64,000 nt of DNA from Lepidodermella squamata (taxonomy: Eukaryota > Animalia > Gastrotricha). Below are positions 1-27,910 of this stretch, piece after piece. A program made the position numbers and the translations under genes. The stretch lies in NCBI GenBank assembly GCA_047495785.1, contig JBLDXI010000001.1:1860001-1924000 (forward strand), written 5' to 3'. The notes under the pieces are model-generated. The model did no database searches and was not told where the DNA came from. It saw only the letters and a list, made by a program, of their open reading frames with translations. How positions within the stretch are numbered: the first letter of the stretch is position 1; each line of letters begins with the position of its first letter.

Positions 1-1688
1 GTTTCCGACGAGAGTATGACGGTTAACGTCCTTAGTGAGCCCTGCAGAAATGCGAGGAGGCTTATTCTTTTTCTTCTTCGAGACATTGCGGTCTGGGGTG
101 AAAACAGCTAACTCTTCTCCGCTATAAACCAAATGCATTAGCAATAGTAAACAATAATTTGCTTATAACTAACTTTACGGCGTAGAAAACGACCTGGCCT
201 TGGATTGGGCTCGAGATACCATCTTCAGGTAGTGAGTCAGTGAGGCCTTTTCCTTTTCGCTTTTTTCGACGATTCTTTGCAATTTTTGTTGACTCGTCAA
301 GAGGCTGCTCACGTTCCAATTGATGGAACGGAGTAGGTGACTTGGAGAGAATGCTTATCGAAACCACATGACCATCTGGGTCTTGCAGTGTGGCCGGCAC
401 AGTTGGTGTCATAGAGGTTCCACTATTGACAATTAGGTCATTCGGAACACTTTCTCGCCTTCCATGACCTGAATTCACGCGAAGGTCGGGTGACTGGCGA
501 GGTGTGAGAAGCGAAGGCATTTGCTTGCTAGCTATTTTAGCCAGATGTTTGGCCGATGCCGGGAATCCACTCGGAGGCTTACCTGTGACAACGACGCTAT
601 GTTTTAATACCTCAGTGGGCTTTGAGGAATCAAGGGTAAATGACTTTTCGGTGATGAAAAACGTTTGTTGTGACATCGTGTCGCCTTCATCGTCCGGCTC
701 AGGGCTGTATTGAACGGCACGATCGACGGTTCTCACGACGGGTTTTACAGGTTCCTGGGACTTGATAGGCTTCGGGAGCTTCTTAATGGGCGGTTTGACC
801 AGGACTAGCGACATCGTTTTCGACCGATCCATTCGTGCCTTTTCCAGGCCTGAGTTACGCTTCATATCAAAACCAGACCCTTTTACATTGAAATCGACCG
901 GGGAGTTTTCTTCCATCTTCTGTAGTTTCGTCGTACCTCTGAAGGGAATGATTTTCGGTAGAGGCTTGAATGTATCGCTCATGGGCGGTGGCTGGGAGAT
1001 TTTATCGTCCATCACCTTAGGTCTAGACTTCTGGGTTAATGAAAGGCCTTTGACTGGAGGGGCAAGGCGGCGAGGAATTAGAAGACCGATGCCCTCGCAA
1101 TCCTTCTTCCAGCGAGTAATCCACGTGCTGAGATTGTTCAGGTCAACTACGGAATCTTTAACGTTGGTTTTTTGTTTCCCAGGGGAAACGGACGAATTTT
1201 CTCTAGAGTAAGGCACCATCATTGATGAGGAATGCGTTCTGATAGACGGGCTTTCAAAGGCTTTCCTAGAAGGAGATGCAATCGTCGGCAAGGCCATTGC
1301 CTTCTCAATCTCAGCCTCCGGAACAGGTAATGCAACTCGAATTTTTAAACGATGCTCTTCATTTTGTTTCGATGGAAGCGCATAAGCATTCGAAAGGCGG
1401 GTTGCAGGAATATGTTTGCGATACTTGAGCAGCCGCTCGGGTGATTTTGGCACCGGTGCTGATTTCAGCGAGATTTTTGTCTGGAATTGCTTTCTTTGAA
1501 TAACAGAAATGGAGATTACTGCCGGGTAAATGCATTTTAAAATACCTTGTTGAAAAGCCGGGAGCCCATGCCAACGTTTTGTTTTCTTCGGAATTCGGCT
1601 CCGACAATATTTTGTTGCCAGGCTGCCTCATTTCCGGCATTGAAGGCATTCGCCTGAAGAATATATGTGGTCTTTTATCCGTTAGCAT
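1..1688 (-). CDS. Uncharacterised basic Ser/Pro/Lys-rich protein, multi-exon, continuing off the left edge
   Basis: 443-aa ORF 122..1453 overlapped by upstream ORF 1359..1688, with plausible GT-AG junctions near 1546 and ~195/122. No recognisable domain; boundaries approximate. Confidence 0.6.
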
Positions 1689-2415
1689 GAAAGAATTCTT
1701 ACCCCAAATCCCCCGGCATCAGTCTCACCCTTGTCTCAAAGAACAGAGCATATGGGAAAACAACACCTTCATTGTTCTAATCTCGATGCGAAACACGTAG
1801 AATTGTCAGTGGTTGTTGTTCTCTCATAACTGAATGTAAAACGGCATAACGGTTCGCGCTGATTATTGATTCGCGACCTTGTTTTTACGCTGAATAAAGC
1901 ACGCGCATTTGATGATGTCACTCTCCAACGGCAACGCGTTAATATTTTAACGAGCGGCCAGCCCTCGCTCGTACGCTTGCGCTAGAGGGGGTGTAGGGCT
2001 CTTCGATTTTTTCAAGGAGTCACGTGGGGAATATGGGATGCTGCGAAAGTTAACCAGCCTATCTGAATAATCCTATTCCACCGATTTTCTTTACAAAGTT
2101 TCAAACTCTGAACTGATTGCTGTGCAAGATAACCTTAGCTTCTACTCGGGTTTATCAATGATTGTAGTTCTAACAAAACTACCGCTACAATAGTGAGCTG
2201 CAATGAGATGCAGTCACGATTCTAGGAATGGTCTTGATTTTAAAGAAAACATATTTGTGGCTGCGCTCAGCCTTATAAAGCGCATCCTTTGAAAAAGTTA
2301 AGAAATTGAATAATTAATTTATTCTAATAACAACCATGTCAGCTAAACTAATATTACAGAGTAATTCAAAGGATGATATCGAGTCTAATTTTATTGGTGG
2401 ATTGATGCAGCAGAA

Positions 2416-2757
2416 TTAATTTTCGATCATCTTCTGACAAAGGCGAGTGACCATTGATGAAGTGCGCGCTCGGGTGCCACCACTCCATTTTTCTTGACAT
2501 TCCTCAAATTTGCGCCTCTGCATTTCTCGATCCATGACATTGACGATTTCAGCTAGCTTTTCATTGCTTCGATTCTCGCCGACTCTCATCAACAAATGCT
2601 CTAATAATCGATAAAATGTGGCTTCATTTTAGATGCAAGAATCAAAATCCTTACTCAGTTTCCGTATTTTCGCATCGGTGTTACTGTTGCTGTTCAGTGC
2701 TTCGATTGAACAGGCAAGAATGACGAGGGCAGAGACGAAGATAATCAATGTGTTCAT
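2416..2757 (-). CDS. Small secreted prepropeptide-like protein (95 aa, 2 exons)
   Basis: Exon 1 2757-2655 (signal peptide MNTLIIFVSALVILACSIEA), intron gtaagg...tattag, exon 2 2600-2416 open to TAA. Ends in ...MQRR-KFEECQEKWSGGTRARTSSMVTRLCQKMIEN. Confidence 0.7.
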
Positions 2758-3246
2758 TTTGCCTGGTACCGATGAGGATGGAAAAAATCCAAAACAGGAT
2801 GGAATGAGGATGGAAGAGCGGGGTGGCGACACACGTGCTGTCAGAGGCTATTGGAATTAATTGTCGACAGACTAGTACTTCAATTGCCATTAAAATTGTT
2901 AATTGTCAGGCGCTCGATTTTAACAGTATAAAACAGCAAGCCTTAGGCGACTAATCAATAAACGAGTGGTTATTCCTACTCCACGATTAACGCACGATTA
3001 AGCACCAGCGAACATTCACCATATGACTTTGGTCACGATGAGGCTCGCTTCAAAACACAGGATTCAATTGCCAGGAATTGATTTGAAAATACCTGTAGCA
3101 CTCATTTTTGTAGTTTTCATGGGCGGCAGAAAGACAACAGAATTCCCACTTGGAATTTTATTTGTTTATTCTTTCGAAAGGCAATTGACACATGTATTAT
3201 CTACTACCGTGAATAATATATTGATAAAAATAATCCATAGTTTCTT

Positions 3247-5582
3247 TTAGTAAAAGCAAGCGTAAACCTCCAAACCAGAATAGCCAGTAGCCGCATCCAC
3301 AGTGATGTAGTAATCCATTCCTGAATCTGATATTGGTTTAACTACCCATTCATTACTGCCCGTCCAGTAAGGCGCCCAGTCGTAGTCATTCGGAGTCGCA
3401 ACACGTCCCTTCTTAACAAACATATCGGCGTCACCATTATCGCCGTAAATTTGAACATTTTGAGTCGTTGCTCCGAGGGGCACAAAGACAACGTAGTAAC
3501 GAAGGTCACCGGTACTAGCCGCAGTGTTGTATTCAGAATCACAATTAGCTATTCTGATTGGGTTCGATGGTGATCGGCCCGGGGTGGATCTTGGCGTTGT
3601 CGTTGTTGTTGTTGTCGCGCGGGTTGTAGTTGTGGTAACACCAGGTCGGCGGGTTGTTGTAGTTGTAGTAGTCGTAGTTGTTGTGGGAGTATTGGTGTTA
3701 CCATTGCTGGGATTGGCTACACAGTCACTGATATCTAACCCACCCGCTTTCCAAGCATTGATAACAGCAATCGTGTCACCGCCATTAATTTGGTACTGTT
3801 TGACAGCAGATGCAACATCACAACCAGCTTGCTTCAAAGTGGTGTCCTGGCGCCAGAAAAATCGGTTGGCGTAGATGTAAGCGCGACCAGCGAGCCGAGG
3901 ATCCCACCGTGGACTCGTTGCTAGCTTGTAAAAGATGTAATTAGGCACAGCACTGCAGGTATGAGGATCTTGGCACACTGATTTGCCACCGCGGCAGTAA
4001 CGGCTATCTGGAGAGGGGAAGTACCACGAGTATTGGTTATTTTGGGTCATGTCTCGCAGGCAACGATCGTTATTCGCCATGCAATTTTGACCGACACACC
4101 AGTTGACGGAGCCTGAAGCGTAGAACTCAGCCATCATGCCAATAGCGTCTGAGAAAGCTTCATTCAAACAGCCCGGCTCTCCGGAGTAAACCAGCTGTGA
4201 ATTGTCGCTGATATCGGTAACCGCGTGACCGATTTCATGGGCGACTACATCTAGACACGTCCCGAGCGGGTAGAACATGGTACCACCGTCACCGAAATAC
4301 AACGCCTCGCCGTCCCAGTAAGCGTTGTCATAGTTCTGATTGAAATGTACGGCAAAATTCAAAATTCCGGTCGGGGTCAGCTGTGTCAAGCCGCCCCATG
4401 AAGCATTCTTGAGCATGTCCGTCGCTCTTATAGCGTTAGCGAAAGAATCTGCTACCACGCCATAGCCGCGGTTGTTGCCGTCAGTGGGACCAGTCGAGCA
4501 AGGGTATGTATAAACGCGGCTGGATGAGCTTAAATCACTGCGGCCGCTGTTCATATGATAAACGTTGACCGTTCCATCAGCATTTGACATCTGACATTGA
4601 CTTGGACTGAGTCTTTTCGCTTTCGAGGATAGATCCTCCTTGCCTGATGTTGAACCGTAAGTATAACGTCCGGTTTTTGAATTTCCGCCATCCCAGCCTC
4701 CTTTCAAACAACTCCATGAATCTTTCACGGTTTGGAGCTTAGTATCAACTAAGCATGTGAAGCAAATAGCCGCAACTGACTCGGTCATGCTAATGCGAGC
4801 AGCTTTAGAACGGATTTGGACTAAATCAGCATAGACAACACTATCAGGATCAGAGGTGTTGGTGCCGTAGTCGTAGACAAATCGTTCAGACGTAGTGTTC
4901 AGGATTCGTCCGTCAGTTTCGGTTTGATATTTTGTTTTGCAAACTGCTTCCGACATACCAGGGATCGGCAGAGACCTGCTAGCGCCTCTTTTGAATTTTA
5001 GAACTATGTCATTTTTCGGATTATCAGTGGATACAATGGCTAAGCCGCGGACGCCAGCTTTCTTTTCGACTACTGTGGCACCGCTGCCCCAAACTTTCAA
5101 GTTGTTGATCCTGTGTTCGTAACGTTTGATTACGTCGCCGTTTGGGAGTTCCATTTCATTGCCGGTTGGGACGATTTGCTCATTAGCACCTTCAGTGTCT
5201 GTTGCTAGGCCGAAGAGAGATCTGGAAGCGGGCTGCTCAATAGCTCTAAACGCTTCGTCTGTTTTAGAAAAAGTCAATGCTTGCTATTAACATTCGATAG
5301 GAGTAGAGATTTCTAACCTTTGTCTGGAGGGGCAGATTTTTGTCTTGCATTTCCAGATGCTGAGCTGCTTGGTGTAGCCCGAGTCGGCGCCCTCCTAGGC
5401 TGAGTAGTTCTTGTAGTTGTTTCTTCATCAACGCTACCATCATCATCATCGCCATCTTGGCCATAAGTATTTCTGCCCCCTCCGCGGCCCCAACCTCCTA
5501 GACCTCCTCCAGGTTGAGTAAATGCCAAATTCAGGCAATACAGGAAACAGAAAATCACAGCAAGAAAGCTTAACCTTGCCAT
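3247..5582 (-). CDS. M4 (thermolysin/LasB-like) zinc metalloprotease copy A: signal peptide, propeptide, catalytic domain, Thr-rich linker, PPC domain; single intron
   Basis: Motifs GGNSKTGRYTYG, NAYWDGEALYFGDGGTMFYPL, VVAHEIGH, GCLNEAFSD, DPHTCS and PPC motif GDADMFVKKG..YDWAPYWTGSNE. Signal exon 5582-5318; uninterrupted ORF 5277-3247. Confidence 0.93.
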
Positions 5583-5969
5583 TTTACTTCTTCGAATCTA
5601 CTGTACTCTTTAGACCAACGTGATTCCTTCTTATATCTAATGCATGCAGGTGTTTACAGGTGTAATTACACGCCTTACGTATGCGTGTTCGTGTGGCTGG
5701 CATCTTTATAACCACTCGATTACTGGCGGCAATAGTAATCGTGCTCGGCGTGTAATAAATGTCGTCATGTCGAGCCAGCTCAGAATTCAACTTGACAATG
5801 CTTAATTGTATATACCCATCGCCAAGTTACATAGCGGCATCTAATGAGTCATCCGTTTTATCAAGAATCGTCACCTACGTCTTCAACAATAAATCATTCT
5901 TGGAACTTGGAACGTAGTAAATCACTCTTGGATAACATGTGGTCACTTTGCTTTAAAATCAAAAGGTTA

Positions 5970-8900
5970 TCAATAGTAGCAAGCGTATAGCTCAAGTCCT
6001 GAAAAGGCGGAGGCTGCGTGTATCAAGATGTGGTAGTCCATATTTCGTCGATTGATAGGCTCTACCACCCACTCATCGGACCCTAAATAATAATTTTCAT
6101 TATTCAAAGACTTTCCTTCCAGATATACAAAATTACCTTCCCAGAAGGGAGCCCAGTCATATGAACTCTGATTGGAAATATCATGTGAGTAAGAAATATA
6201 TTTAGAACTTTAATAAGGTCTTACCAGTGTTGGCTGAGAGCCAGCTTTTATCTGTTACATAGAAAGTACGAGTTAAGTTTGCATTAGATTCAAGAGTTCT
6301 TAAACCCACGTAAAGATCTGCATCGCCATTCTTTGCATAAATTTGCACATTTTGGGTTTTGGCATTTGCTGGAACTGATATCACAAAACGGATTTGTTCA
6401 TTTGTTTTCGCCCAAATTCCTGAACATTGATAACATTTCATTAGACTCTCTTCATGTCAGCGAATAAATACCCATAATTGATTTGCAGTTTGTCAATCGT
6501 TTCGCCGGGAATAAAGCCATTGTGGTTGTTTGCTTCGCTGTTGTCGTACTCGGACGTTTAGTGGTAGTGGTGGTAGTGGTAGTTGTTGTCGGTTTGGTAG
6601 TAGTCGTTGTAACGCCTTTAATCGTGGGTACTGACAGTATTACTTTAGCGGGCGTCGTCGTCGGGGTGGTAGCAGCAGTTGTTGTACTAGCTGTAGTTGT
6701 GGTTTTTGTCGTCGTTGAAGTTGTGGGGGACGTTGGAGTGGTCGGCGGAGGCGTAGTCGTCGTGACCCATGGCTCCCAGTCCGAACCCTTCGTAATGCAG
6801 TCGCTAAGGTCAATACCAGCAGCACCCCAAGCCTTCCCGACAGCGGCCACGTCGCCCCCAGCAAGATTCGCCGTCTGAACCGCGGTTGCCACATCACACC
6901 CAGCTTGCTTGATAGTTGTTTCCTGCTTCCAGAACATGCGATTTGCAACCAGAAATGCGCGGGCTGCCGATTTGGTAGTCCAACCACTTGAAGTCGCTAA
7001 CTTGTAGAAGATGTAGTTCGGAATCGCACTACACGTGTGCTGAAACATCATCTTTCATATCAATAACTAAGCAAGTAAAGGTAATTACCGGGTCAAAGCA
7101 ATCAGATGGGTTTGCCTCATTGCAATATTTCGGGTCAGGGGTTGGAAAAAACCCAGAGTATGGTGTGTAAACTTTGAGATCGCGAAGGAATGGCAACGAT
7201 ACCATGCACTCGGGCGCGATCAGGAAATCGTTCTTCCCTGTTGCGTAGTACTCGGCTAATTCTCCCATTATGTCGGAAAAAGCTTCGTTCAAACAGCCAG
7301 GCTCGCCACTGTAAATCAACGCTGAACCACTGCCAGTGACTGCATGCCCGATTTCATGCGCAACGATGTCCAAGCATGACTGAAAGATGGAATGAGATTG
7401 TCAAACTGCGATGATTCTATGAAAAGACAACAACCCCTAAGGAATAGAAATACTTCGATCCATCTCCGAAATACAAAGCTGTGCCGTCCCAATAAGCTGG
7501 ATCACAAAAGTATGAGCAAGTAGTCGCGAATTTAAGGAAACTGAACTTGCCATTGTCGTATCCGCTTTTGAAATGAACAGCCATTTTCAGCTTCCCGGCC
7601 GGAATGATTTGTTTCATGGTTTCAAATCCCCCTACAGAATGGTACAGACTTGTCGCAACAATGAAAAAATCTCACTGACCGTATTCGGGATTGAGCAGCA
7701 TTTCGTATGTCTTCAGACCATTGTACAAAGTATCAGCTGGATAAGGTTAGAATTGTAAGGTTTGAAACTGATTTTGTGGTATGTACCTAAAGCGCCGTAA
7801 GATCGGCTATCATCGTCTTCGTCCAAGCCTTTGAGTAACATCAAGTGTAATTCGAATCACGCAGGTGACATGAAAATTACCAGTTTCACACGTAAAAGTA
7901 TGCGGCTTTAGGCTATCATCTATGTCCCAATAGCTATTATGCATGTGTAGCACCTGAACTGTCAAATCAGGATTTGATAGCTGGCAATTCGTGTCTGACA
8001 ACTTCAAAACAGGCAAAGGATCCTTGCCGTTCTCGCCGTAGGAATACTGCCCCATTCGCTTATTGCCGCCCTTGTACCCTGAGTGAATACCACTCCAATG
8101 TTTCAGCACCTTATTCGCTCGCGTGTCCACAAGGCAGTAGATCAAAAGAGGATCAAACTCATCGGAACTTGCTCGTTTCATCTCAACCAAATCTGCATAA
8201 ACTGTGTCGTTCAAACCTCCCGCTCCTCGGTCGTAAACAAAGCGTTCCAAGTCAAACTCCACATCAGTCAAATCCGCATTGGGCTTACTCGCTGAATATG
8301 CCTTTTTACAGGATTCTTTAGACGCCTCTTCCGCCGGCAATGAGCGCAAAGTGCCAAGACTGTGCTCATACTTCAGCGCGATATTTTGTGAGAGCCGCGA
8401 TGCAGATGGAGGCGCGAAAACCTTCCAAACGCCTGATTTCTTCTCGACAATCGTCGCACCGCTGTTCCAAACTCTGAAACCTGCAACGCGATGGTCGACT
8501 CGCCGCATCCGAGTGCCGTCTTTCAGCTCTAGAGGTGAACCAGAGTCTGTAACAGTTTCGAGGTTCGATGTTAATAGCAGCAAATCTCGAGATGTTGGCT
8601 TGGCAATATTCGCGAAATCGCTGGCTATTCAGGTGCAAGCAAGTTCGAATAGATTTACATTGAAGTCCAAGTATTGTACCTTTGTCTGGCTTCAACATTT
8701 TTATCCTGCCGTTATTTGGTGGATTTGGTGCCATCTGGAACACTGAGCCAAACTGTGCGATGGGCGGAAACGTTGCCTTTTTGGTAGTGGTAGTGGCTTT
8801 AGTGTATGTTTTCGTCACACTTCTCGTCGTAGTCTTCGAAGCAGAAAATGGTGTTGAATTGTATGCCCTTACCCCGATTCTGATTCCAACCCGGCCTTGC

Positions 8901-8995
8901 GAATTGGATGTAGCATTGTCGACGCCGTCGCTTTTGGCGAAAGATAGTAAGGTGATCAAACCCACCACAAACAATGGGTTCAAAGAATTTCTCAT
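5970..8995 (-). CDS. M4 metalloprotease copy B (about 12 exons)
   Basis: Signal MRNSLNPLFVVGLITLLSFAKS; GGNKRMGQYSYG; AYWDGTALYFGDG; IVAHEIGH; NEAFSD; AEYYATGKNDFLI; Thr-rich linker; PPC ending YACYY-TGA at 5970. 11 introns keep frame (one GC-AG at 7550). Confidence 0.9.
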
Positions 8996-9493
8996 TCTGT
9001 GCGGCTATGAAACACGTTATTCTATACGCTTTTAGCTGTTTTTACTCTATAATGTTATACTCCATTTTTTCGTAGAAATTAACGGCACAACACGTAAATG
9101 ATCCGCAAGTAAGATAAGTAAGACGTCTACGAAATCTGTATGCCGTCCGGTTTCGACTTCGTGCTTTTCCATTGCAGAAATGTCCGCGAAGTCAAAAGCG
9201 GATGCTATTTTTTCATTTTTTCAGGGCAAAATGAACCTTCAAGTAATGTCTACCGCAAACTGATCATCACGAACCAGACATTGACCTATCCTGGATGAAA
9301 TCGTCATCAAAGCTTCCGCTTAGAGAGATACCATGCCTTATGTGAATAAACGGACTACATGTAAACAAGTATATTGAATTTTATTGTTCAGATCCCGAAA
9401 ATAACAATAAAATCGCGGCTAATTTTACTAAAAATAGCATCCGCTATTATGGCAAATTAATCGTAACAAAGCGGAATCGTCTCGAATGGAAGC

Positions 9494-12400
9494 TTAAATG
9501 AAGCAGGCGTTGAGGGAAACGTCATCAAACCTGAGAAAAGAGAGTCTTAACACAAAAAAAAACGAAAAGTACAAGAAAAAACTTACGCTTTCGAGGCGTA
9601 AATCATGATGTAGTACCAGCCTTTGACAGTAATTTTCGTCCTAACCCATTCAACACTGCCCTTCCAGAATGGTCGATATTGATCCGTACTTCCCTAATCG
9701 CGATAAAAATGAGTTGGTGATGACTAAAAATAACAAATCTTCCTCTCACCTGGGCAACTGTTGGAATAGATCCAGCTCGGATGTACAAGTCCGCATCACC
9801 TGAGGAAAGTAAGACAATTCGCTATTAAATCCAGAAATGTTTCCAAGTTACCAGTGAATCCGTCGATGAAAACATTCATCCTATCAACGCTATCGGCAAC
9901 GAAAATCTTGAAATACAAAGCCTTGCCATCACCAGCTGCCAGGTCTGAAACAGCTTCATTTTAGCGAATGGTATCAAGTATATAGACAAAAACCTGCCTT
10001 CGTAATCTTCGCAATTCTGAATGATCCTAATGTTATCAGAAGGCGCCGGGGTAGCAGGAACAGGGGCTGATGGGGGCCTCATCGTAGCAACTGTAGGTAA
10101 AGGCCTGTAAGTAACCGGAGCGAAAGTTGGCCTGGTAGCTGCTTGAGTGGTCTGGCGGTTCGGGATAAGCCAGGTAAGCCAAGCTGGGACAGTGATACTC
10201 CACCCAGTAGTAGTAGCCCTAGTAGCCGGGGCAGCAGTTGGTCGGGGCTGGGGTGGCGGAGGCGGCGGGGTAGGTCTGTAAGTTGGACCTGGTGGGGCTT
10301 GGGTCGGTGGTGGCCTGGGTCCAGGGGTGGGCATGCATCCTGAAATATCGATATCCACAGCTTTGAAAGCTTCCATCAAATAACGCGGCTCGCCCCCGAT
10401 CCTGTACTGATTTGCTGAAACTGCCACGTCGCAAGCTGCTTGTTTCATTTTATGATTCTACAAGACCGATTTATGTTATAAAAAAAATATTTGTTGTAAG
10501 AAAAACCTTTTTCCAGAAGGCAGCATTCGCGTTCAAGAAGACCTTCCAAGCGCTTTTAATGTCCCAAGTTGGTGAGGTAGCTAGCTTATAGAAGACGTAG
10601 TTGTAGATGGCACTGCAGTGGTGAGGATCGGAATCTGCTGCGAATTTCGTGATTGACATAGGAATAGTCATATCGCGGAGGTAAGGTCGCTGTTCAACAT
10701 GACCGTATTGCTCATAATTCATAAATATTTCCAAATTCACGGCTTACGGATTTCATGCAACTTGCGCCAATTTTGAAGTCATTTTTGCCTTCTACATAAA
10801 ATTCAAGTGCTTCAGCCATCATGTCCGAAAACGCCTACATTAATCCATGATGCGTGACGTTATTTTAACCAAACAAAAATGCTTGCTACCTCATTCATAC
10901 ACCCAGACTCGCCTTCGTAGATGAGATCCGACGTCATTTGGGTGACGCTGTGGCCGATTTCGTGCGCAACAACGTCAGCACATGTGCACAGCCTGTCAGT
11001 CAATAAATTTTAAAATTAGAAAAATGAAGGCGAAATAAAAGAGATACACATACGGTACAAATGTGGAGCCTCCATCGCCTACATAAAACGCCGAACCATC
11101 CCAAAATGCGTTATCGTACCTTAAAGACCGATGCTTAAAGTTGAGAAACGGGAAAAGCTGGACCTTACTTCACGTTGAAATGCGCGCCAACATTAAACGT
11201 TCCCACCGGGGTGTATTTGTTGATGTCCCGAGAAAATCCTATAATGGAGCGATGAAGGATTAGGTAATTTTAATCCTAGTCAACGCGCTTTACCCCAGTC
11301 AGGATCCAGTAAAAATTGGACAGTTTTATTCGCGTTGTAGAAACAATCAGCTGTCGAAAATAATGTTGAATTCTGAACTTTTGATTGATCATTTTCTCAC
11401 CCATGGGCCCGTAGGCACCATTGATAGGATCATCCGGTCCGCTCTGGCAGTTGTAGGATACCACAGGCGTAGACCCGGGTGAAATTCGGCTGGACCTGCT
11501 ATTCATGTTGTAAACGGTAACTGTCTTAGCGGCGTTTTGCATAAGGCATTGGCCCTGGCTGTTTGTTATAGCAGGCAGCTGAGGGCGATTCGGAGATTCT
11601 CCATAGCGATACCTGATTTTTTAAAACAAACTTGAATCAACCAAGAAAACTTTGCATCGACTCACTTTCCAGTTCTTGTGTTGCCGCCGTAGCCGAAATA
11701 TGTGTGAAGGCCATCCCAAGATTTCAGGACCTAAAAAACTGTCAATAAGGAACGAAGCCAGGTGATTGCCCGAAATTTTAACCTCGCGTTTTCGCATGTC
11801 GATCAAGCACAGGACTCGGAATGGTATATTTTTGACATATTCTAAGCCCCTTATATCAGCTTCAACTGCCAGGGTTTGCGAGCCATCTGCAGCTTGGTAG
11901 AAATAAGTTCGTGTTTTGTTGTCGTAGACCTAAGAAAGACAATTTTCTCCTAAAATTACCAGCTCGAAGTCGAAATTTACTGTATCTCTAGATTCGACCT
12001 CCCAATGGACCTTGCAAATATTGATGGCCGCTGCATCTGGAACGCCGCTGTTGTCGCTTGCAGCTTCCCTCGGAATGCGTCGCAATTTTTGAGGGCCAGA
12101 TGCCGATCGGATCTTAGAAGGTCCAGCGCATAGACCTCGAATAGCTGGCGGTTTGCGAACTGCTACGCCAGAATTCCAAACAGGAATGTTGTCGACAGTA
12201 TGTTCCAGCCTAGATATGACTGACCCATCAGGCATTGTCACCTCTAAAATTGAATTCCATGAAGAAAAATGAAAACAAAAGCAATCGGCATGTACCGATT
12301 CCTGTGGGCACCAAGTCCTCGTTTTCATTGGTCAACTCGAAGATATCCCGAGCTCGAGGGGGAGCTTCATCATCGGCTAAACCTAGGCAAGGATCGTCGT

Positions 12401-12545
12401 CATCCACCGGGGTTTGCTCATCTGAATCAACTACGGTCGCGTTATCATCAGACTTCTCTAAAACCCTGAAATCAGGCCTAGCTATCCGATCAGCTGCGGC
12501 TATGTTGAAGATCAGAAAAAGGAGTAGAGCCTGTTTTATTGGCAT
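9494..12545 (-). CDS. M4 metalloprotease copy C (about 16 exons)
   Basis: Signal MPIKQALLLFLIFNIAAA; GGNTRTGKYRYG; NAFWDGSAFYVGDGG; VVAHEIGH; GCMNE|AFSD; DPHHCS; Pro/Thr linker; PPC GDADLYIRAG, ending NACFI-TAA. 15 introns traced. Confidence 0.9.
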
Positions 12546-12805
12546 TTCTCCTGTTACTCACGAAATTTCAGCTATTACACTGTACGGCTTCTTGAGGCCA
12601 CACATCAGTCATCACTAAAAAATTATTGACGCACTCTGATTATGTGTTTTATTGGCGATTTCACACGTTAAAAGCGAGTCTACTCCACACGAAAAAGCAA
12701 CATTTTTTAGGATCAACATGCGTCACGCCTAAAATGTCGCTAAATAGAAGAAAAGATGGGGAATTTTTTAAATACCTAAATGTCAGTCATAGAGTCACTG
12801 CACGA

Positions 12806-15800
12806 TCAAATCGCGCAAAAATCAAGCTGCAAATCTTGAAATCTGAAATAAATGAAAATTGATAAATGAAACAAAAGAGGTCGGCAAACCCCCTCACCCC
12901 TTGGTCGCAAAAATCATAACGTAGTACCATCCTTTGGTGACTATTTTCGTTCGAACCCATTCAATTGAACCTTTCCAGTAGGGGCGATACTGATCAGGCG
13001 GATTCTTTCGAATAAAACAAGAAAAATTTCCATTATTGATATGAAGACAGAAAGAAATACCGAAGATGTAGTCGGAAGGGTTCCGTTTCTTACATATAAA
13101 TCAGCGTCACCTTAAAAAATCATCTTAAATGTTGAAATGGGAATAAATTGAAGCTCACCATTAGCTGCATCGATGAAAACGTTGATGCGCTCAGCACTGT
13201 CTGGAACCATGACCTTGAAATAAAGGGCGACCCCGTCGTTGGCCGATAATTCTAGACAGAAAAAATCAAGAAAATTGCGATTACCGTAAATAGTAGCCCG
13301 GGCTTATGAATTTTAAATCCCTAAAATTTTAAATTTATTTAAATTTAAATTATTCAAATTTAAAATGAAAAAATGAAAAATCTCAAAAATCTTGGGATAG
13401 CATTATTTTTTATTTTTGGGGCCCTATCATACCCTCCAAACTGGGCTACTAAGAACGATGGGCTTCTATAAGCGAATGGGCGTCTATTTCAACATTTCCT
13501 GCATATAAAATACTTTTTCCTACCTTTGACTGCCTCGCAATTGTTCATCACTGGGATGTTGTCAGTTGGCGAGGCTTTGGTTGTTGCTCCACTTGTCGGT
13601 CTAACTGTAGTCGAAGTCGTCGCATTCAGCCGGGGAAGGGGCGCCCGAGTCGGGGGCGTTGTCGGTTTCGTCGGCTGGAGGGTGATAATCGTCAACCACG
13701 GCGGAAGAGATATGGTGAACGGGCTCGCTTTAGTCGTAGCTCGAGTCGTCGTGGTCGCGGCTTTTGTCGTAGTTGTCGTTGCAGCCGCAGTCGGAGCCGC
13801 CGTGGCAGGGGTGCTAGGCTTCGGGGGCATGCAACTAGAAATATCGATGTCTACGGCTTTGAAAGCTTCCAGAATGTACTGCGGATCTCCGCCGACTTTG
13901 AAACGCGACGCTGTGGTCGCAACATCACAAGCCGCGGTTTTCATGCTATGGTTCTGGAATTTTAAATAAAATCATAAATTTGACAGAAATTTGAGTAGAA
14001 CCTTTTTCCATAGAACGGCATTTGCATTTAAGAACGCTTTCCAAGCTCCCTTAATGTCCCAAGTTGGTGAGGTAGCCAGCTTGTAGAAGACATAGTTGTA
14101 GATCGCACTGCAATGGTGAGGGTCGGTTTCTGGGGTAAATTTGTTGTAAGACATCACGATGGACATATCGCGTAAGAACGGCCGCTTTCAATATAAATAA
14201 GATTGAAGATTTAGGATCGAATTTATTGAAATTTTACAGTTTGCATGCAATTTGCGCCGATTTTGAAATCATTTTTGCCGTTTTGGTAGAATTCCAACGC
14301 CTCGGCCATCATGTCAGAAAAAGCCTGCATAATATAAAGATATAAAGATATAAACCTGGTGAAAAATTCGCCTTAAAGTAACTCGCCTCATTCATGCAAC
14401 CAGATTCTCCAGAATAAACTAGATCTGACGTCATTTGAGTGACGCTGTGGCCGATCTATCAAATAGAGATCATATTAATCTGTAGCCACTTGAATCCGAT
14501 TCTTACCTCATGAGCTACAACATCTTCGCAGGCGCATAACCTAAGAAAGAAAAGTAATTTCGAGGCATTTTGGACGATTTTTTCAACGTACGGTGTGAAC
14601 GTTTTACCACCGTCGCCAACATAGAAAGCAGAGCCGTCCCAAAAAGCGTTGTCATATCTCACGTTGAAATGCGCCCCAACATTGAAAACGCCTGAGGGGG
14701 TATACTTTTTCATATCCTGCGAGAAACCTAGTTAAAATTTTCAATTTCAACGGGATCTTTTGTAAAATAAAACGAAGCCTAACCCCATTCAGGATCAAGA
14801 AGAAATTGAACAACTTTGTTTGAGTTATAAAAACAGTCGGCTAAATAAAATATAAAAAAATCCAACAAATTTAGGTGAATGGCCTCATTTTTTACCCAAT
14901 GGGCCGTATGCTGTGTTGACAGGGTCGTCCGGTCCCGTGTCACACGGGTAGGTCACAACTGGCGTACGACCAGGTACAATTCGACTTGTACTACTTTTCA
15001 TGTCATAAACTATGACCGTTTTATTCGCATTTTGCATTAAGCAGTCTTTTTGATCCGAAGATAGGGAAGGCAGTTTCGGCCGTGTTTCTCCGTATCGATA
15101 CCTAAGTAAAATTGAGAAATAAGGCGTAGGGGAAGTCCGAAACTTTCGCCTACTTTCCAACTTTCGCGTTGCCGCCATTACCGAAAAACGTCGAAAGAGC
15201 GTCCCACGATTTTATGATCTTTTACAAAATAAATTAGAAAAATTTAGGTGATTTCCCAATTTTTCACCTCATTTTTCTTAGCATCGATGAGGCAAATAAC
15301 GCGAAATGGGATATTTTTCGCGTATTCTAGGCCTCTGATATCGACCTCGACCGCGTCGATGAGCGACCCGCCTGTTTCCTGGTACTTGTAAAATTTCGAT
15401 TGACTCTCGTAAATCTCGTCAATATCAGTAAGTTCCCAATGCGTTTTGCATGATTTGATCGCAGTTTCATTCAACGCGTCAAGGTCTAGTGAACTAGCCG
15501 CTTGCCTTGCGACTCTGTTCAGCTTTTTCGGCCCTGAAGCTGATCGAATTTTTGTAGGGCCTGCACATAGACCTCTAATGGGCGGCGGCTGGATCACCGC
15601 GGCTCCAGAATCCCAGACTGGGATGTCATCAACGGTATGCTCAAGCCTCGAAATCACTGACCCATCAGGCATTTGAACCTCTAAATATCGTAGCGATAAA
15701 TATTTGGAAAATTGGAAAGAATCGGATGTTTATTACCGATCCCCGATTCAACCAGATCCTCATTATCGTTGGGCAGGTGAAAAATTTGGCGGGCAGTCGG

Positions 15801-16001
15801 CGGTGCTTCGTCTTCGGGCAAATCTTTGCATGGATCGAAATCTTCAGAATGTTGTGGCAGTTGGAAATCGCCCCGCTTAGCTCGCATCAGCAACCCATCA
15901 TCTGTTTTGAGTTCAGGTACGAAGTCGACCAATTTCCTGTTATTGGAGCAAATCGCTCCGTTTGTCAGCAGGAAAACAGGCAGCAAAATAGCCAACTTCA
16001 T
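12806..16001 (-). CDS. M4 metalloprotease copy D (about 15 exons), closest paralogue of copy C
   Basis: Signal MKLAILLPVFLLTNGAIC; GGNAKVGKYRYG; NAFWDGSAFYVGDGG; VVAHE|IGH split by an intron; NE|AFSD; DPHHCS; PPC GDADLYVRNG, ending DFCAI-TGA. 14 introns traced. Confidence 0.9.
13282..13488. mobile_element. Degenerate MITE-like insertion enlarging an intron of M4 copy D
   Basis: Inverted repeat tagtagccc (13291) / gggctacta (13443), AT-rich core, three tandem gggcNNcta motifs at the right end. The host intron is ~270 nt versus ~50 nt at the same position in copies B and C. Confidence 0.55.
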
Positions 16002-16402: not shown

Positions 16403-18420
16403 TTACTCCGGCAAATTGTAGAATGAGAAATTCGTCACTGAGACCTTCTCCGATGAAATCGGCTTCCTTGAAATGACTAGACCATAGGGCGTTTCGAGCC
16501 GAATCAAGGTGAACTGAAAATTAAACAAATTAAACAAATTACAAATATTCAAAAATCAGGTTTCAATTTATCCAGCAAAAATTAGCGGACTTATTCCTGA
16601 GAGTAACCTCCGTCGTGTTATCCCTCTTCATGAGAAGGATTTCGCCATTCGTCTGTGCTAGGTCGGCACGAGGCTACCGGCGGCGCTCCCCTAAGCTCAA
16701 GCACAAGGCTATCGCGGCCGGTGACAGGAGCCAATGACCGGTATTTGGGCATCTCTGCCCAGCTACTTTCTAGCCGTGGACCGGAGAATTTCAACCCAGG
16801 TCGCAGTTGAACAACGAATGTGTTCCGTGTGTTAACCTGATCAGCGAACTTCAGGCTATAGGCCCGCCCATTAGTTATGAATCATCAACACACATATAAA
16901 CAAAAACGCACTCGAGAAAAAATATCCACCCAGCTCATTTGCATATGCACACAAACAAAAATAATGAGGGGGTAAAAAAAATACTAGAAAATAATAGTAG
17001 TAAACACATACTTTGAATTCTTTACCCGGATCGTCCGTATTGTTATCCTGATTTGACGGAATAGCAATATTCACATCGACGTTTACCACAGTAGGCTCTG
17101 GAATTGCGACTGAATCGCCAACTTTCATCAAATCACTGAAAATTATAGTGAAATATTTCTGAAATTAGGAATTAACAATTGTAATTACGGTGCCATGTTG
17201 TGTATAACAACTGGAATACAATACGGAGCTGAAGATTCGTTAGCCACATCGCATAGACAGAACGCTAGCTCTGCATCAGACTTCGCAAATGCCACGGTTT
17301 TACCAAGCACAACAACGCCAGTATTTTGCCCGACTTGTAATTCAGAGAGAGGCACTCTTCTCAGGCGCAATCCGCTCACAGGGTCTCTACAATAATGAGA
17401 AAAAAATTGAAGAACGGATTTCTCATTTCGGTTCCTCACTTGTATACTCCCAAATCCAAATCACTAATGCTTTGGAGCATTTGCTGAAGCCGCTTAAACT
17501 TAAGGCGGCCCTTTTCTTTGCAAATGGTATTCACTGTTGCGAAAAACTGAGCAATTTGCTCAAGCTTGCTCTTCGGATCCGGCCATGTCGGATCAAGTCT
17601 AGCAGCTTGGACCAAGTCACTAATTGTCGGTTTATACTCGCACAAGTATCGATAGAGCATTGCGCGATTGTAATACATATCAGGTATGGCTCGAATGGCA
17701 GGGTCTTTTTCAGCCTAATAAATGCGTTAAACTTATAGCTCTGAGATCTCAGATAAAAACAGTTCACTCCCTTACTTGAGTATATGCTTGAAGAGTATGA
17801 GTCAGCATCAATCGTTTGTTCGTAGAAACAAAGAACATTGACATGTAGGCATTGCCCAAACATAGCCAAGATTGGCCATCAGTAGGGTCGAGAGCTACAG
17901 CTTGCTTTGCTCTCTCTAAGCTGTCCTCAAGTTGATTAACTCTCTCCTGCAAATTTAATCCAGAATTAACGGAGCCAGACAGTGCTCGAATGGTCATAGA
18001 GACACCGCGAAGACTCGCTTTGTTAGACTTCCATTTCAAAGCATCGGTGAAGCAGTTTTTGGCTGATTGAACGTCTCCTTTCTTCCAAAAACACTCGCCC
18101 AGGAGATTCCACGCTTCAACAGATGACGGATCTAGTTTCACCGCTTTTGATAATGCATCGAAAGCTTGCTGGCTAAAATCTGGCAGCACGTTATTGGCTT
18201 TGCCAACGCATAAAAAATACGAGCTTTTCGAAAGCTTGTTTGCATTCAGTTCTATTAGGTCTTGAACAGCTTGCAACTCAACTTTCAGAAGATCTATTTT
18301 CTTCGAGGCGTCGCTCAGCGGGTGAGTTTCAAAGAATTTGTCCCTGAACTCAAACAGCTTGTCAATGGATAGCTGTACAGCGACGAGAGCATCAAGTTCC
18401 AGATCTTTCTCTGATTCCAT
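16403..18420 (-). CDS. TTC5: Tetratricopeptide repeat protein 5 (5 exons)
   Basis: LFEFRDKFFETH, LSKAVKLDPSSVEAWNLLGECFWKKGD, AKQAVALDPTDGQSWLCLGNAY, C-terminal OB region VGDSVAIPEP and FTLIRLETP. Exons 18420-17776, 17714-17440, 17386-17189, 17135-17012, 16513-16403. Confidence 0.93.
16585..16869 (-). ncRNA. RMRP: RNase MRP RNA, nested in the last intron of TTC5 on the same strand
   Basis: Terminal P1 helix (gcgggcctat / ataagtccgc); P3 with AACACAC internal loop; CR-I GAAATTCTCCG (16792-16782) complementary to CR-V ACGGAGGTTACTC (P4); P8 hairpin ggcta-GAAAG-tagct (GARAR loop); P9 gggca-GAGA-tgccc; P19 hairpin; ~285 nt followed by T5. Confidence 0.88.
16894..16944 (-). promoter_or_regulatory. 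Putative type-3 Pol III promoter elements for the MRP RNA (TATA and octamer)
   Basis: TTTATAT about 25-31 nt upstream of the RNA 5' end and a perfect octamer ATGCAAAT at 16944-16937 on the minus strand. Confidence 0.5.
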
Positions 18421-18588
18421 TCTCAATTCTTTAAAATGGAAATGACAATAGTAGCTAAATCCATATCCAAACAAATAACATAAAAATATGGATGATAATA
18501 ATAAGAAAATTGAAGCTCAGAACGTACAATAGAAGAGCCACCAAGATGAGGTAAATTCGCCTTCTCCAATTCCGTTGGTAGAAGTGCG

Positions 18589-27243: not shown

Positions 27244-27317
27244 GCCTCCTTGGCTCAGTTGGCTAGAGCGCCAGTCTCATAATCTGGAGGTCGTGAGTTC
27301 GATCCTCACAGGGGGCA
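27244..27317 (+). tRNA. tRNA-Met (CAT), elongator type
   Basis: GCCTCCT/GGGGGC acceptor stem, CT-CAT-AA anticodon loop, GTTCGATC T-loop, T5 terminator ~9 nt downstream. Confidence 0.95.
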
Positions 27318-27836: not shown

Positions 27837-27910
27837 GGTTCCGTTGTGTAGTGGTTCATCACGTCTGCTTTACACGCAGAAGGTCGCGGGTTCGAACCCC
27901 GCCGGAACCT
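27837..27910 (+). tRNA. tRNA-Val (TAC)
   Basis: GGTTCCG/CGGAACC acceptor stem, TCTGC-TT-TAC-AC-GCAGA anticodon arm, GGTTCGAACC T-arm, T4 downstream. Confidence 0.92.

Follow-up and report, generated by a model that had tools for sequence, protein, structure and literature searches.

Many M4 metalloproteases are virulence factors, and bacterial members of the family degrade many host and microbial proteins. The described systems closest to the locus reported here are pseudolysin (LasB) of Pseudomonas aeruginosa, the vibriolysins that carry a C-terminal PPC domain, Legionella ProA, and a few annotated M4 proteins of molluscs and a brachiopod. A passage of one paper (PMC7851659) describes the family as 'known almost exclusively from bacteria', and our literature search on M4 in animals found no description of an animal M4 family. 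In this work we analyzed a window of 64,000 nucleotides (nt) of the gastrotrich Lepidodermella squamata (assembly GCA_047495785.1, contig JBLDXI010000001.1, positions 1,860,001 to 1,924,000). Six-frame open reading frames (ORFs) and tblastn of the copy A ORF (the longest ORF, 3247-5277, 676 amino acids [aa]) against the window revealed four collinear, complete M4 metalloprotease genes of the pseudolysin/vibriolysin type, A to D, on the minus strand at 3247-16001. The ends of this interval coincide with the stop codon of A (3247) and the ATG of D (16001). We concluded, with a probability of roughly 70%, that a bacterial gene was transferred once into an animal long ago, was inherited vertically from then on, and expanded in tandem, and that the array consists of four intact genes for secreted prepro-M4 endopeptidases with a likely mainly digestive role. 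The four genes (window coordinates) are as follows.

5582..3247, minus strand: M4 copy A, coding sequence for 758 aa with one intron (5259-5317, 59 nt, phase 1); signal peptide at the 5' end of exon 1; HEIGH at 4225-4239, NEAFSD at 4147-4164, DPH at 3952-3969; Thr-rich linker from about residue 609; PPC-fold domain at about 3250-3546.
8995..5970, minus strand: M4 copy B, coding sequence for 809 aa with 11 predicted introns of 45-76 nt; HEIGH at 7344-7358, NEAFSD at 7272-7289; long Thr-rich linker and PPC-like end.
12545..9494, minus strand: M4 copy C, coding sequence for 746 aa with 15 predicted introns (spliced alignment); HEIGH at 10950-10964; Pro/Thr-rich linker.
16001..12806, minus strand: M4 copy D, coding sequence for 738 aa with 14 predicted introns (spliced alignment).

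The gene models were made with a purpose-written spliced protein-to-genome aligner, which allows GT-AG introns in all phases and GC-AG introns at a penalty. The aligner recovered the three cDNA-supported introns exactly (5259-5317, 6252-6309, and 7737-7786) and gave Haliotis and Lingula proteins identical to the annotated ones at every residue; the models of A to D were therefore trusted. All four reading frames are open from ATG to stop. A reading of copy D as a pseudogene was rejected: under a GT-only splicing model the gene looked broken at NEAFSD, and DNA alignment with copy C revealed a GC donor. The N-terminus of each protein resembles a signal peptide, with a short charged part preceding a hydrophobic one, and each contains a 40-aa segment of 53-78% Thr+Pro followed by a C-terminal domain of ∼100 residues. 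The motifs GGNxxxGxYxYG and (Y/F)WDG are present in all four copies, and the number of cysteines ranges from 14 to 20 per protein.

Copy A matched the Pfam families Peptidase_M4 (61.5 bits, cut-off 22.4) and Peptidase_M4_C (73.4 bits, cut-off 24.4), and exon fragments of copy B likewise matched Peptidase_M4_C. The best solved-structure match of copy A was Pseudomonas pro-elastase LasB (8cr7, E 1e-43), followed by Pseudoalteromonas Mcp02 (E 4e-40) and Legionella ProA (E 1e-33), with thermolysin and aureolysin far weaker; the sole strong NCBIfam match was the Legionella ProA model NF045902 (E 2.5e-41). The zinc-binding and catalytic HEXXH is HEIGH in all four copies, in register with HEVSH of pro-elastase. 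NEAFSD, with the third zinc ligand, is also present in all four; its distance from the second His is 20 residues in B, C, and D, and a 2-residue insertion widens it to 22 in A. The transition-state residues (Tyr155 and His223 of LasB) are kept in A to D as well, where VYSGE and DPH(T/H)CS align with lvYrGq and dvHhsS. For the propeptide the Pfam FTP family gave E 0.088 only, and the phmmer alignment to pro-elastase spans it (ORF residues 44-190 against chain residues 67-197). Judged from their sequences, copies A to D carry the tested defining features of the M4 family, and their affinity is with the pseudolysin/vibriolysin type, not the thermolysin type.

The PPC profile (PF04151) matched the C-terminal domain below the Pfam gathering score (21.6 vs 25.9 bits, E 4e-4, profile positions 5-69 of 70), and a PDB search gave a sequence match to the C-terminal domain of the Vibrio vulnificus protease vEP (2luw, E 2e-6). 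The AlphaFold (AF2) model of the region is all-beta with a predicted local distance difference test (pLDDT) score of 89.5. Its top Foldseek match was vEP C-ter100 (2luw; template modeling [TM] score 0.65/0.74, 26% identity), and further top matches were collagenase PPC/collagen-binding domains (5sv5, 2o8o, and 4hpk) and the Tk-SP jelly roll. We assign the domain by its modeled fold to a divergent PPC type. An initial annotation of this DNA had proposed four same-strand M4 genes with HEXXH, NEAFSD, DxH, and a Thr/Pro-rich linker, with motifs and affinity close to LasB; the spliced models and the pro-elastase match bear this out. The PPC domain that it placed in every copy stands by fold and falls short by Pfam score.

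Relatives of the array were sought in several ways. An exhaustive HMMER search gave 7,410 matches, the best 150 of which were examined; few of these rows carry taxon names. The closest among the 150 were unnamed metagenome proteins from the European Nucleotide Archive (ENA), 38-53% identical and encoded on gene-poor, eukaryote-like contigs; the extra cysteines and an ...ACYY end are common to them and the window genes. The named rows of the next tier (∼35% identity) were gammaproteobacterial (Fluctibacter, Zooshikella, Pseudoalteromonas, and a 'vibriolysin'). At least three annotated animal M4 rows were among the same 150, from Haliotis asinina, Argonauta hians, and Lingula anatina. Another M4 group is encoded on contigs of megabase size with few genes, in places as tandem copies, and for a neighboring group the surrounding genes (dnaA, dnaN, and a sigma factor) are bacterial. 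Scanning of prokaryotic genomes with a tight alignment found nothing closer than ∼40% identity over 143 aa and only thermolysin-type or distant bacterial loci, which served as the outgroup in the trees. The nearest ESM Atlas clusters were all bacterial, with no eukaryotic lead, and word-index protein searches returned few, mostly distant matches and no named animal relative. One of the ENA metagenome proteins, P0034 (A/B-type, a full-length open frame of 680 aa), carries HQIAK at the HEXXH site and is devoid of NEAFSD too; by these motifs it appears to be a pseudo-protease with no catalytic function.

We examined the position of the window genes in two phylogenies. In a FastTree analysis of 191 catalytic domains, they formed one clade with nine metagenome proteins. 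In an IQ-TREE analysis under the site-heterogeneous model LG+C20+F+G4 (posterior mean site frequency [PMSF]; 85 rows × 312 columns, 200 bootstrap trees), thermolysin-type and pseudolysin-type sequences were split at 100/100 and the window clade received 100/99. All animal-like rows, including those of Haliotis, Argonauta, and Lingula, were joined with one unlabeled row (P0038), with an ultrafast bootstrap (UFBoot) value of 89 and a Shimodaira-Hasegawa-like approximate likelihood-ratio test (SH-aLRT) value of 98, in 91% of the 200 bootstrap trees. Within the window clade, five metagenome proteins fell with A and B and a single one with C and D, so the split between A/B and C/D is older than the species from which those proteins come. 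The animal clade is itself embedded among bacterial M4s, and an old bacterial origin is therefore the best reading.

The neighborhood of the array contains the following features.

16871-18474 (exons seen as ORFs), minus strand: TTC5 orthologue with matches to TPR families and TTC5_OB, directly upstream of copy D on the same strand.
16590..16863, minus strand: RNase MRP RNA gene (Rfam RF00030, full-length match, 86.1 bits vs gathering score 50), beside the TTC5 exon span.
27244-27317 and 27837-27910, plus strand: two tRNA genes (Rfam, 65 bits each), ∼600 bp apart.

Other animal genes on the contig encode a tektin, a RhoGAP, a major facilitator superfamily (MFS) transporter, and a Cys-loop receptor; the tektin is nearest to lophotrochozoan tektins (Lingula 66%), with no close match in any annotated species. 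The TTC5 neighbor had been named in the initial annotation and is confirmed by the TPR and TTC5_OB matches. In a metagenome relative, a C/D-type M4 gene 51% identical to copy C is immediately preceded, on its own strand, by a TTC5 orthologue 69-76% identical to that of the window, and this order is present in two independent metagenome assemblies from separate samples (contigs L085 and L086). Since it matches the TTC5-D order of the window, the arrangement is older than the split of two quite distant species.

The paralogues themselves point to an old expansion. Amino-acid identity is 63% between C and D (75% in the catalytic domain), 45% between A and B, and 38-39% between the two pairs. Synonymous differences (pS) amount to 0.79-0.81 in every pair, C-D included, and exceed the Jukes-Cantor limit, so that dN/dS is not computable and pS is given here together with non-synonymous differences (pN), which range from 0.245 (C-D) up to 0.45. 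With synonymous sites saturated and pN lower, the duplications must be very old and the copies kept under constraint. The tandem expansion suggested earlier for these four collinear genes is supported. Tandem M4 duplication was also observed in Haliotis asinina (L088, 6001-14298) and on a megabase-sized, eukaryote-like contig (L080, 6001-14247); tandem expansion is thus recurrent among animal M4s.

Expression mapping covered copies A and B (3200-9100). DNA contigs of run X1 tile the whole of this interval. The contigs of run X2 are cDNA-like, with the SMART template-switch oligo at their 5' ends, introns skipped, and zero depth between A and B; the skipped introns have CT..AC ends, equal to GT..AG on the gene strand. 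For copy A, template-switch-oligo ends at 5604, 5609, and 5676, 22-94 nt upstream of the ATG, are the capped 5' ends of the mRNA, and no spliced leader was seen on them. Depth in X2 was ∼1000-4400 on A and 4-18 on B. The intron joint of A (5259-5317) was covered at a depth of ∼1160, and two introns of B (6252-6309 and 7737-7786) appear as joints in cDNA contigs at a depth of 4-18. Spliced copy A was also found in two further small runs from another study. Since A exceeds B in cDNA by about two orders of magnitude, the earlier description of the array as a 'battery' was overstated. We concluded that A to D are physically integrated in the animal genome and processed as host genes, because introns of A and B are spliced in cDNA, the flanking genes are animal, and the TTC5 synteny is conserved.

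The course of events that we favor is as follows. An early animal lineage, ancestral to the gastrotrich, molluscs, and brachiopods alike, would have acquired a bacterial M4 gene; a eukaryotic 5' exon would have been added, and vertical inheritance would have followed. In the window lineage the gene would have duplicated in tandem beside TTC5 and acquired many short introns. Several points weigh against this account. The bacterial backbone of the pseudolysin-type group is a polytomy of which the animal clade is one arm; it points to no particular donor, and the case for the direction of transfer comes from distribution only. In the FastTree analysis the animal groups branched next to each other at the base of the pseudolysin-type group without forming a single clade, and a quick IQ-TREE run put the window clade beside a bacterial group with a support of 80-86. 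The stem of the window clade is long (0.75), support for a single animal clade is moderate, and the window clade has no intron in common with the M4 genes of molluscs and brachiopods (Haliotis and Lingula gene structures). With few labeled rows among the best 150 of 7,410 matches, other eukaryotic M4 groups may be missing from the trees, and the age given to the transfer, earlier than the divergence from molluscs and brachiopods, presupposes that the species are related in the ordinary way. As to expression, the reading of run X2 as cDNA is our own, its database label being 'RNA?'.

The conflicting trees, the long stem, and the lack of common introns would be accounted for if the window clade and the mollusc and brachiopod M4s came from separate ancient transfers, out of related gammaproteobacterial-like donors, and were grouped through long branches and thin sampling. 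However, the site-heterogeneous tree unites the animal-like rows, and long-branch attraction would draw the window clade to the outgroup, not to other animals; we regard separate transfers as unlikely. Still less probable in our view is that no transfer took place; M4 would then be an ancient family of eukaryotes, passed on vertically and missing from most animals through loss, its bacterial likeness being due to slow evolution. This would suit the position of the animal clade outside any named bacterial group and the presence of the family in at least three phylum-level animal lineages. It is opposed by the confinement of the M4 body to one exon in Haliotis, in Lingula, and on several eukaryote-like contigs, which is typical of acquired bacterial genes, by the bacterial architecture (a probable FTP/PepSY-type propeptide and PPC), by the all-bacterial ESM Atlas neighbors, and by the almost exclusively bacterial distribution stated in the source quoted above (PMC7851659). 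The lack of any vertebrate, arthropod, or nematode name among the labeled rows points the same way, weakly, few rows being labeled.

A recent lineage-specific transfer, bacterial contamination, or misassembly might be suspected from the best solved-structure and family-library matches, which are bacterial virulence proteases. This explanation is refuted by 41 short spliceosomal introns (three of them cDNA-confirmed), the animal flanking genes, saturated synonymous sites, nearest bacterial sequences only ∼35-40% identical, and TTC5-M4 synteny in independent assemblies of a distant relative. One ancient transfer followed by vertical descent thus remains the preferred account. Horizontal acquisition, as originally proposed, is partly supported: the genes lie inside the bacterial M4 family, the thermolysin-type outgroup being bacterial and split off at 100/100, and within the pseudolysin-type group they belong to one arm of the polytomy. 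The suggestion that the transfer may be ancient and not lineage-specific is borne out by the single clade with mollusc and brachiopod M4s, the saturated pS, and the TTC5-M4 order of the relative, and the M4-like genes said to be annotated in molluscs are represented in that clade by the Haliotis asinina and Argonauta hians rows. The phylogeny that had been proposed as a check, with vertical descent from a broad eukaryotic M4 clade as the outcome that would speak against acquisition, came near that outcome in showing descent within a wider animal clade; this clade is still embedded among bacterial M4s.

Introns of the array were compared among the copies and with those of the relatives. The 41 introns have a median length of 53 nt and measure 45-76 nt with one exception, a 272-nt AT-rich intron in D (13252-13523) at a site where C has a 53-nt intron. 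GC-AG introns are needed to keep the frame at 9945-9997 in C and 14325-14386 in D, and at each site the sister copy has a GT donor. An intron at 14456-14506, present in D and not in C, splits the zinc motif as HE|IGH, and one at 11930-11980 in the propeptide is present in C and not in D. Spliceosomal introns, as first claimed, are present in the models of all four genes, three of them with cDNA confirmation, with the reservations that copy A has just one and that C and D each need a GC-AG intron. All-vs-all comparison of the 41 introns revealed no similarity that would indicate an introner-like repeated element.

The sole intron of the Haliotis M4 gene lies within the signal peptide. In the Lingula gene a signal-peptide intron comes first, a single exon then encodes the entire propeptide and catalytic domain, and the exons of a C-type lectin follow; among the eukaryote-like relatives, several consist of one ORF of 650-750 aa. 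With one exon encoding the M4 body in both Haliotis and Lingula, this body must have begun intronless, in keeping with a bacterial origin, and the introns found within it in B, C, and D were gained later. B and C/D have three or four intron positions in common, in both place and phase (alignment columns 484, 503, 878, and ∼925), so some gains are older than the A/B-C/D split. It follows that copy A and its intronless kin in other species probably lost the shared introns. The C/D-type gene of the metagenome relative lacks a contiguous block of catalytic-domain introns, which it has probably lost. In Lingula anatina (L089, 6001-10923) the C-type lectin domain on separate exons takes the place of PPC; this fusion is a case of domain shuffling after the gene had settled in animals.

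By homology with LasB and the vibriolysins, the signal peptide would route the M4 protein into the secretory pathway, and the N-terminal propeptide would serve as a folding aid and as an inhibitor until it is cleaved off. Zinc would be held by both His of HEXXH and the Glu of NEAFSD, with catalysis by the Glu of HEXXH, a Tyr, and the His of DPH. The Thr/Pro-rich and probably O-glycosylated linker would carry the PPC beta-sandwich, whose most likely function is to anchor the enzyme on insoluble proteins that serve as substrates. We infer protease activity of A to D from this homology. Copy A, with its one intron and very high expression, would be the working mainstay.

The role of these enzymes is most likely extracellular protein breakdown, with digestion of food favored and defense less likely. 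The very high abundance of A in cDNA would suit an enzyme that works in bulk outside the cell. On contig L087 of a relative (4882-10984), an A/B-type M4 gene stands beside a run of trypsin-domain ORFs (at least one serine protease gene), a stretch that may be a digestive-enzyme neighborhood; together with the transcript level, this neighbor fits digestion slightly better than other uses. Defense against microbes, immobilization of prey, hatching, or matrix remodeling could be proposed in place of digestion, given the broad range of host and microbial proteins that bacterial M4s degrade, the fusion of the Lingula homologue to a C-type lectin, which is a typical recognition module, and P0034, whose lack of HEXXH suggests non-catalytic binding roles in the family. 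Nothing found is directly contrary to such roles, and the preference for bulk digestion is a slight one; we consider them rather unlikely, not far-fetched.

The window genes are further members of an animal M4 branch that databases annotate automatically. The locus and its relatives represent a stable, expressed, and expanded animal branch of an enzyme family that is treated as essentially bacterial. They add a clean case of an old bacterial gene kept by animals, in which synteny and splicing prove integration, and offer a candidate for a major digestive or defensive enzyme in a little-studied animal. With an intronless starting body, every body intron of B, C, and D is a gain, and the array can be used for studying the timing and manner of short-intron gain and loss. 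In a bolder form, which we put forward tentatively and hold to be slightly more doubtful than probable, a single bacterial M4 entered a spiralian or older animal and founded an undescribed protease family that supplies a major secreted enzyme here, and the array is a dated, internally controlled record of intron gain and en-bloc loss.

Compared with known systems, the window proteins resemble pseudolysin/LasB of Pseudomonas aeruginosa (8cr7, pro-form; 1ezm, mature) in GGNxKxGxYxYG, in NAYWDG...FGDG, and in the coverage of propeptide and catalytic domain. They differ from LasB in an identity of only ∼35% and in the addition of a eukaryotic signal peptide, many extra cysteines, the Thr/Pro-rich linker, PPC, and introns. 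The order of propeptide, M4 domain, linker, and PPC is that of the vibriolysins with PPC (Vibrio vulnificus vEP, 2luw; Pseudoalteromonas Mcp02, 3nqx), whereas the window clade falls outside the Vibrio/Pseudoalteromonas crown of the tree and its PPC stays under the Pfam sequence threshold. Copy A is not an orthologue of Legionella ProA (NF045902; 6ya1), as it scores 142 bits against an equivalog cut-off of 900. The proteins of Haliotis asinina (XP_067678922, 'hemagglutinin/proteinase-like'), Argonauta hians, and Lingula anatina (XP_013417113) belong to the same clade as the window genes (89/98). All three are chromosomal animal genes, in tandem in Haliotis, and those of Haliotis and Lingula are built like copy A, with a 5' exon followed by the M4 body. 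Unlike the window genes, these animal M4s are far less diverged from the bacterial enzymes, with 329 and 272 bits against the ProA model vs 142 for copy A; and in contrast to B, C, and D, the M4 body of Haliotis and Lingula is without introns, with a C-type lectin in place of PPC in Lingula.

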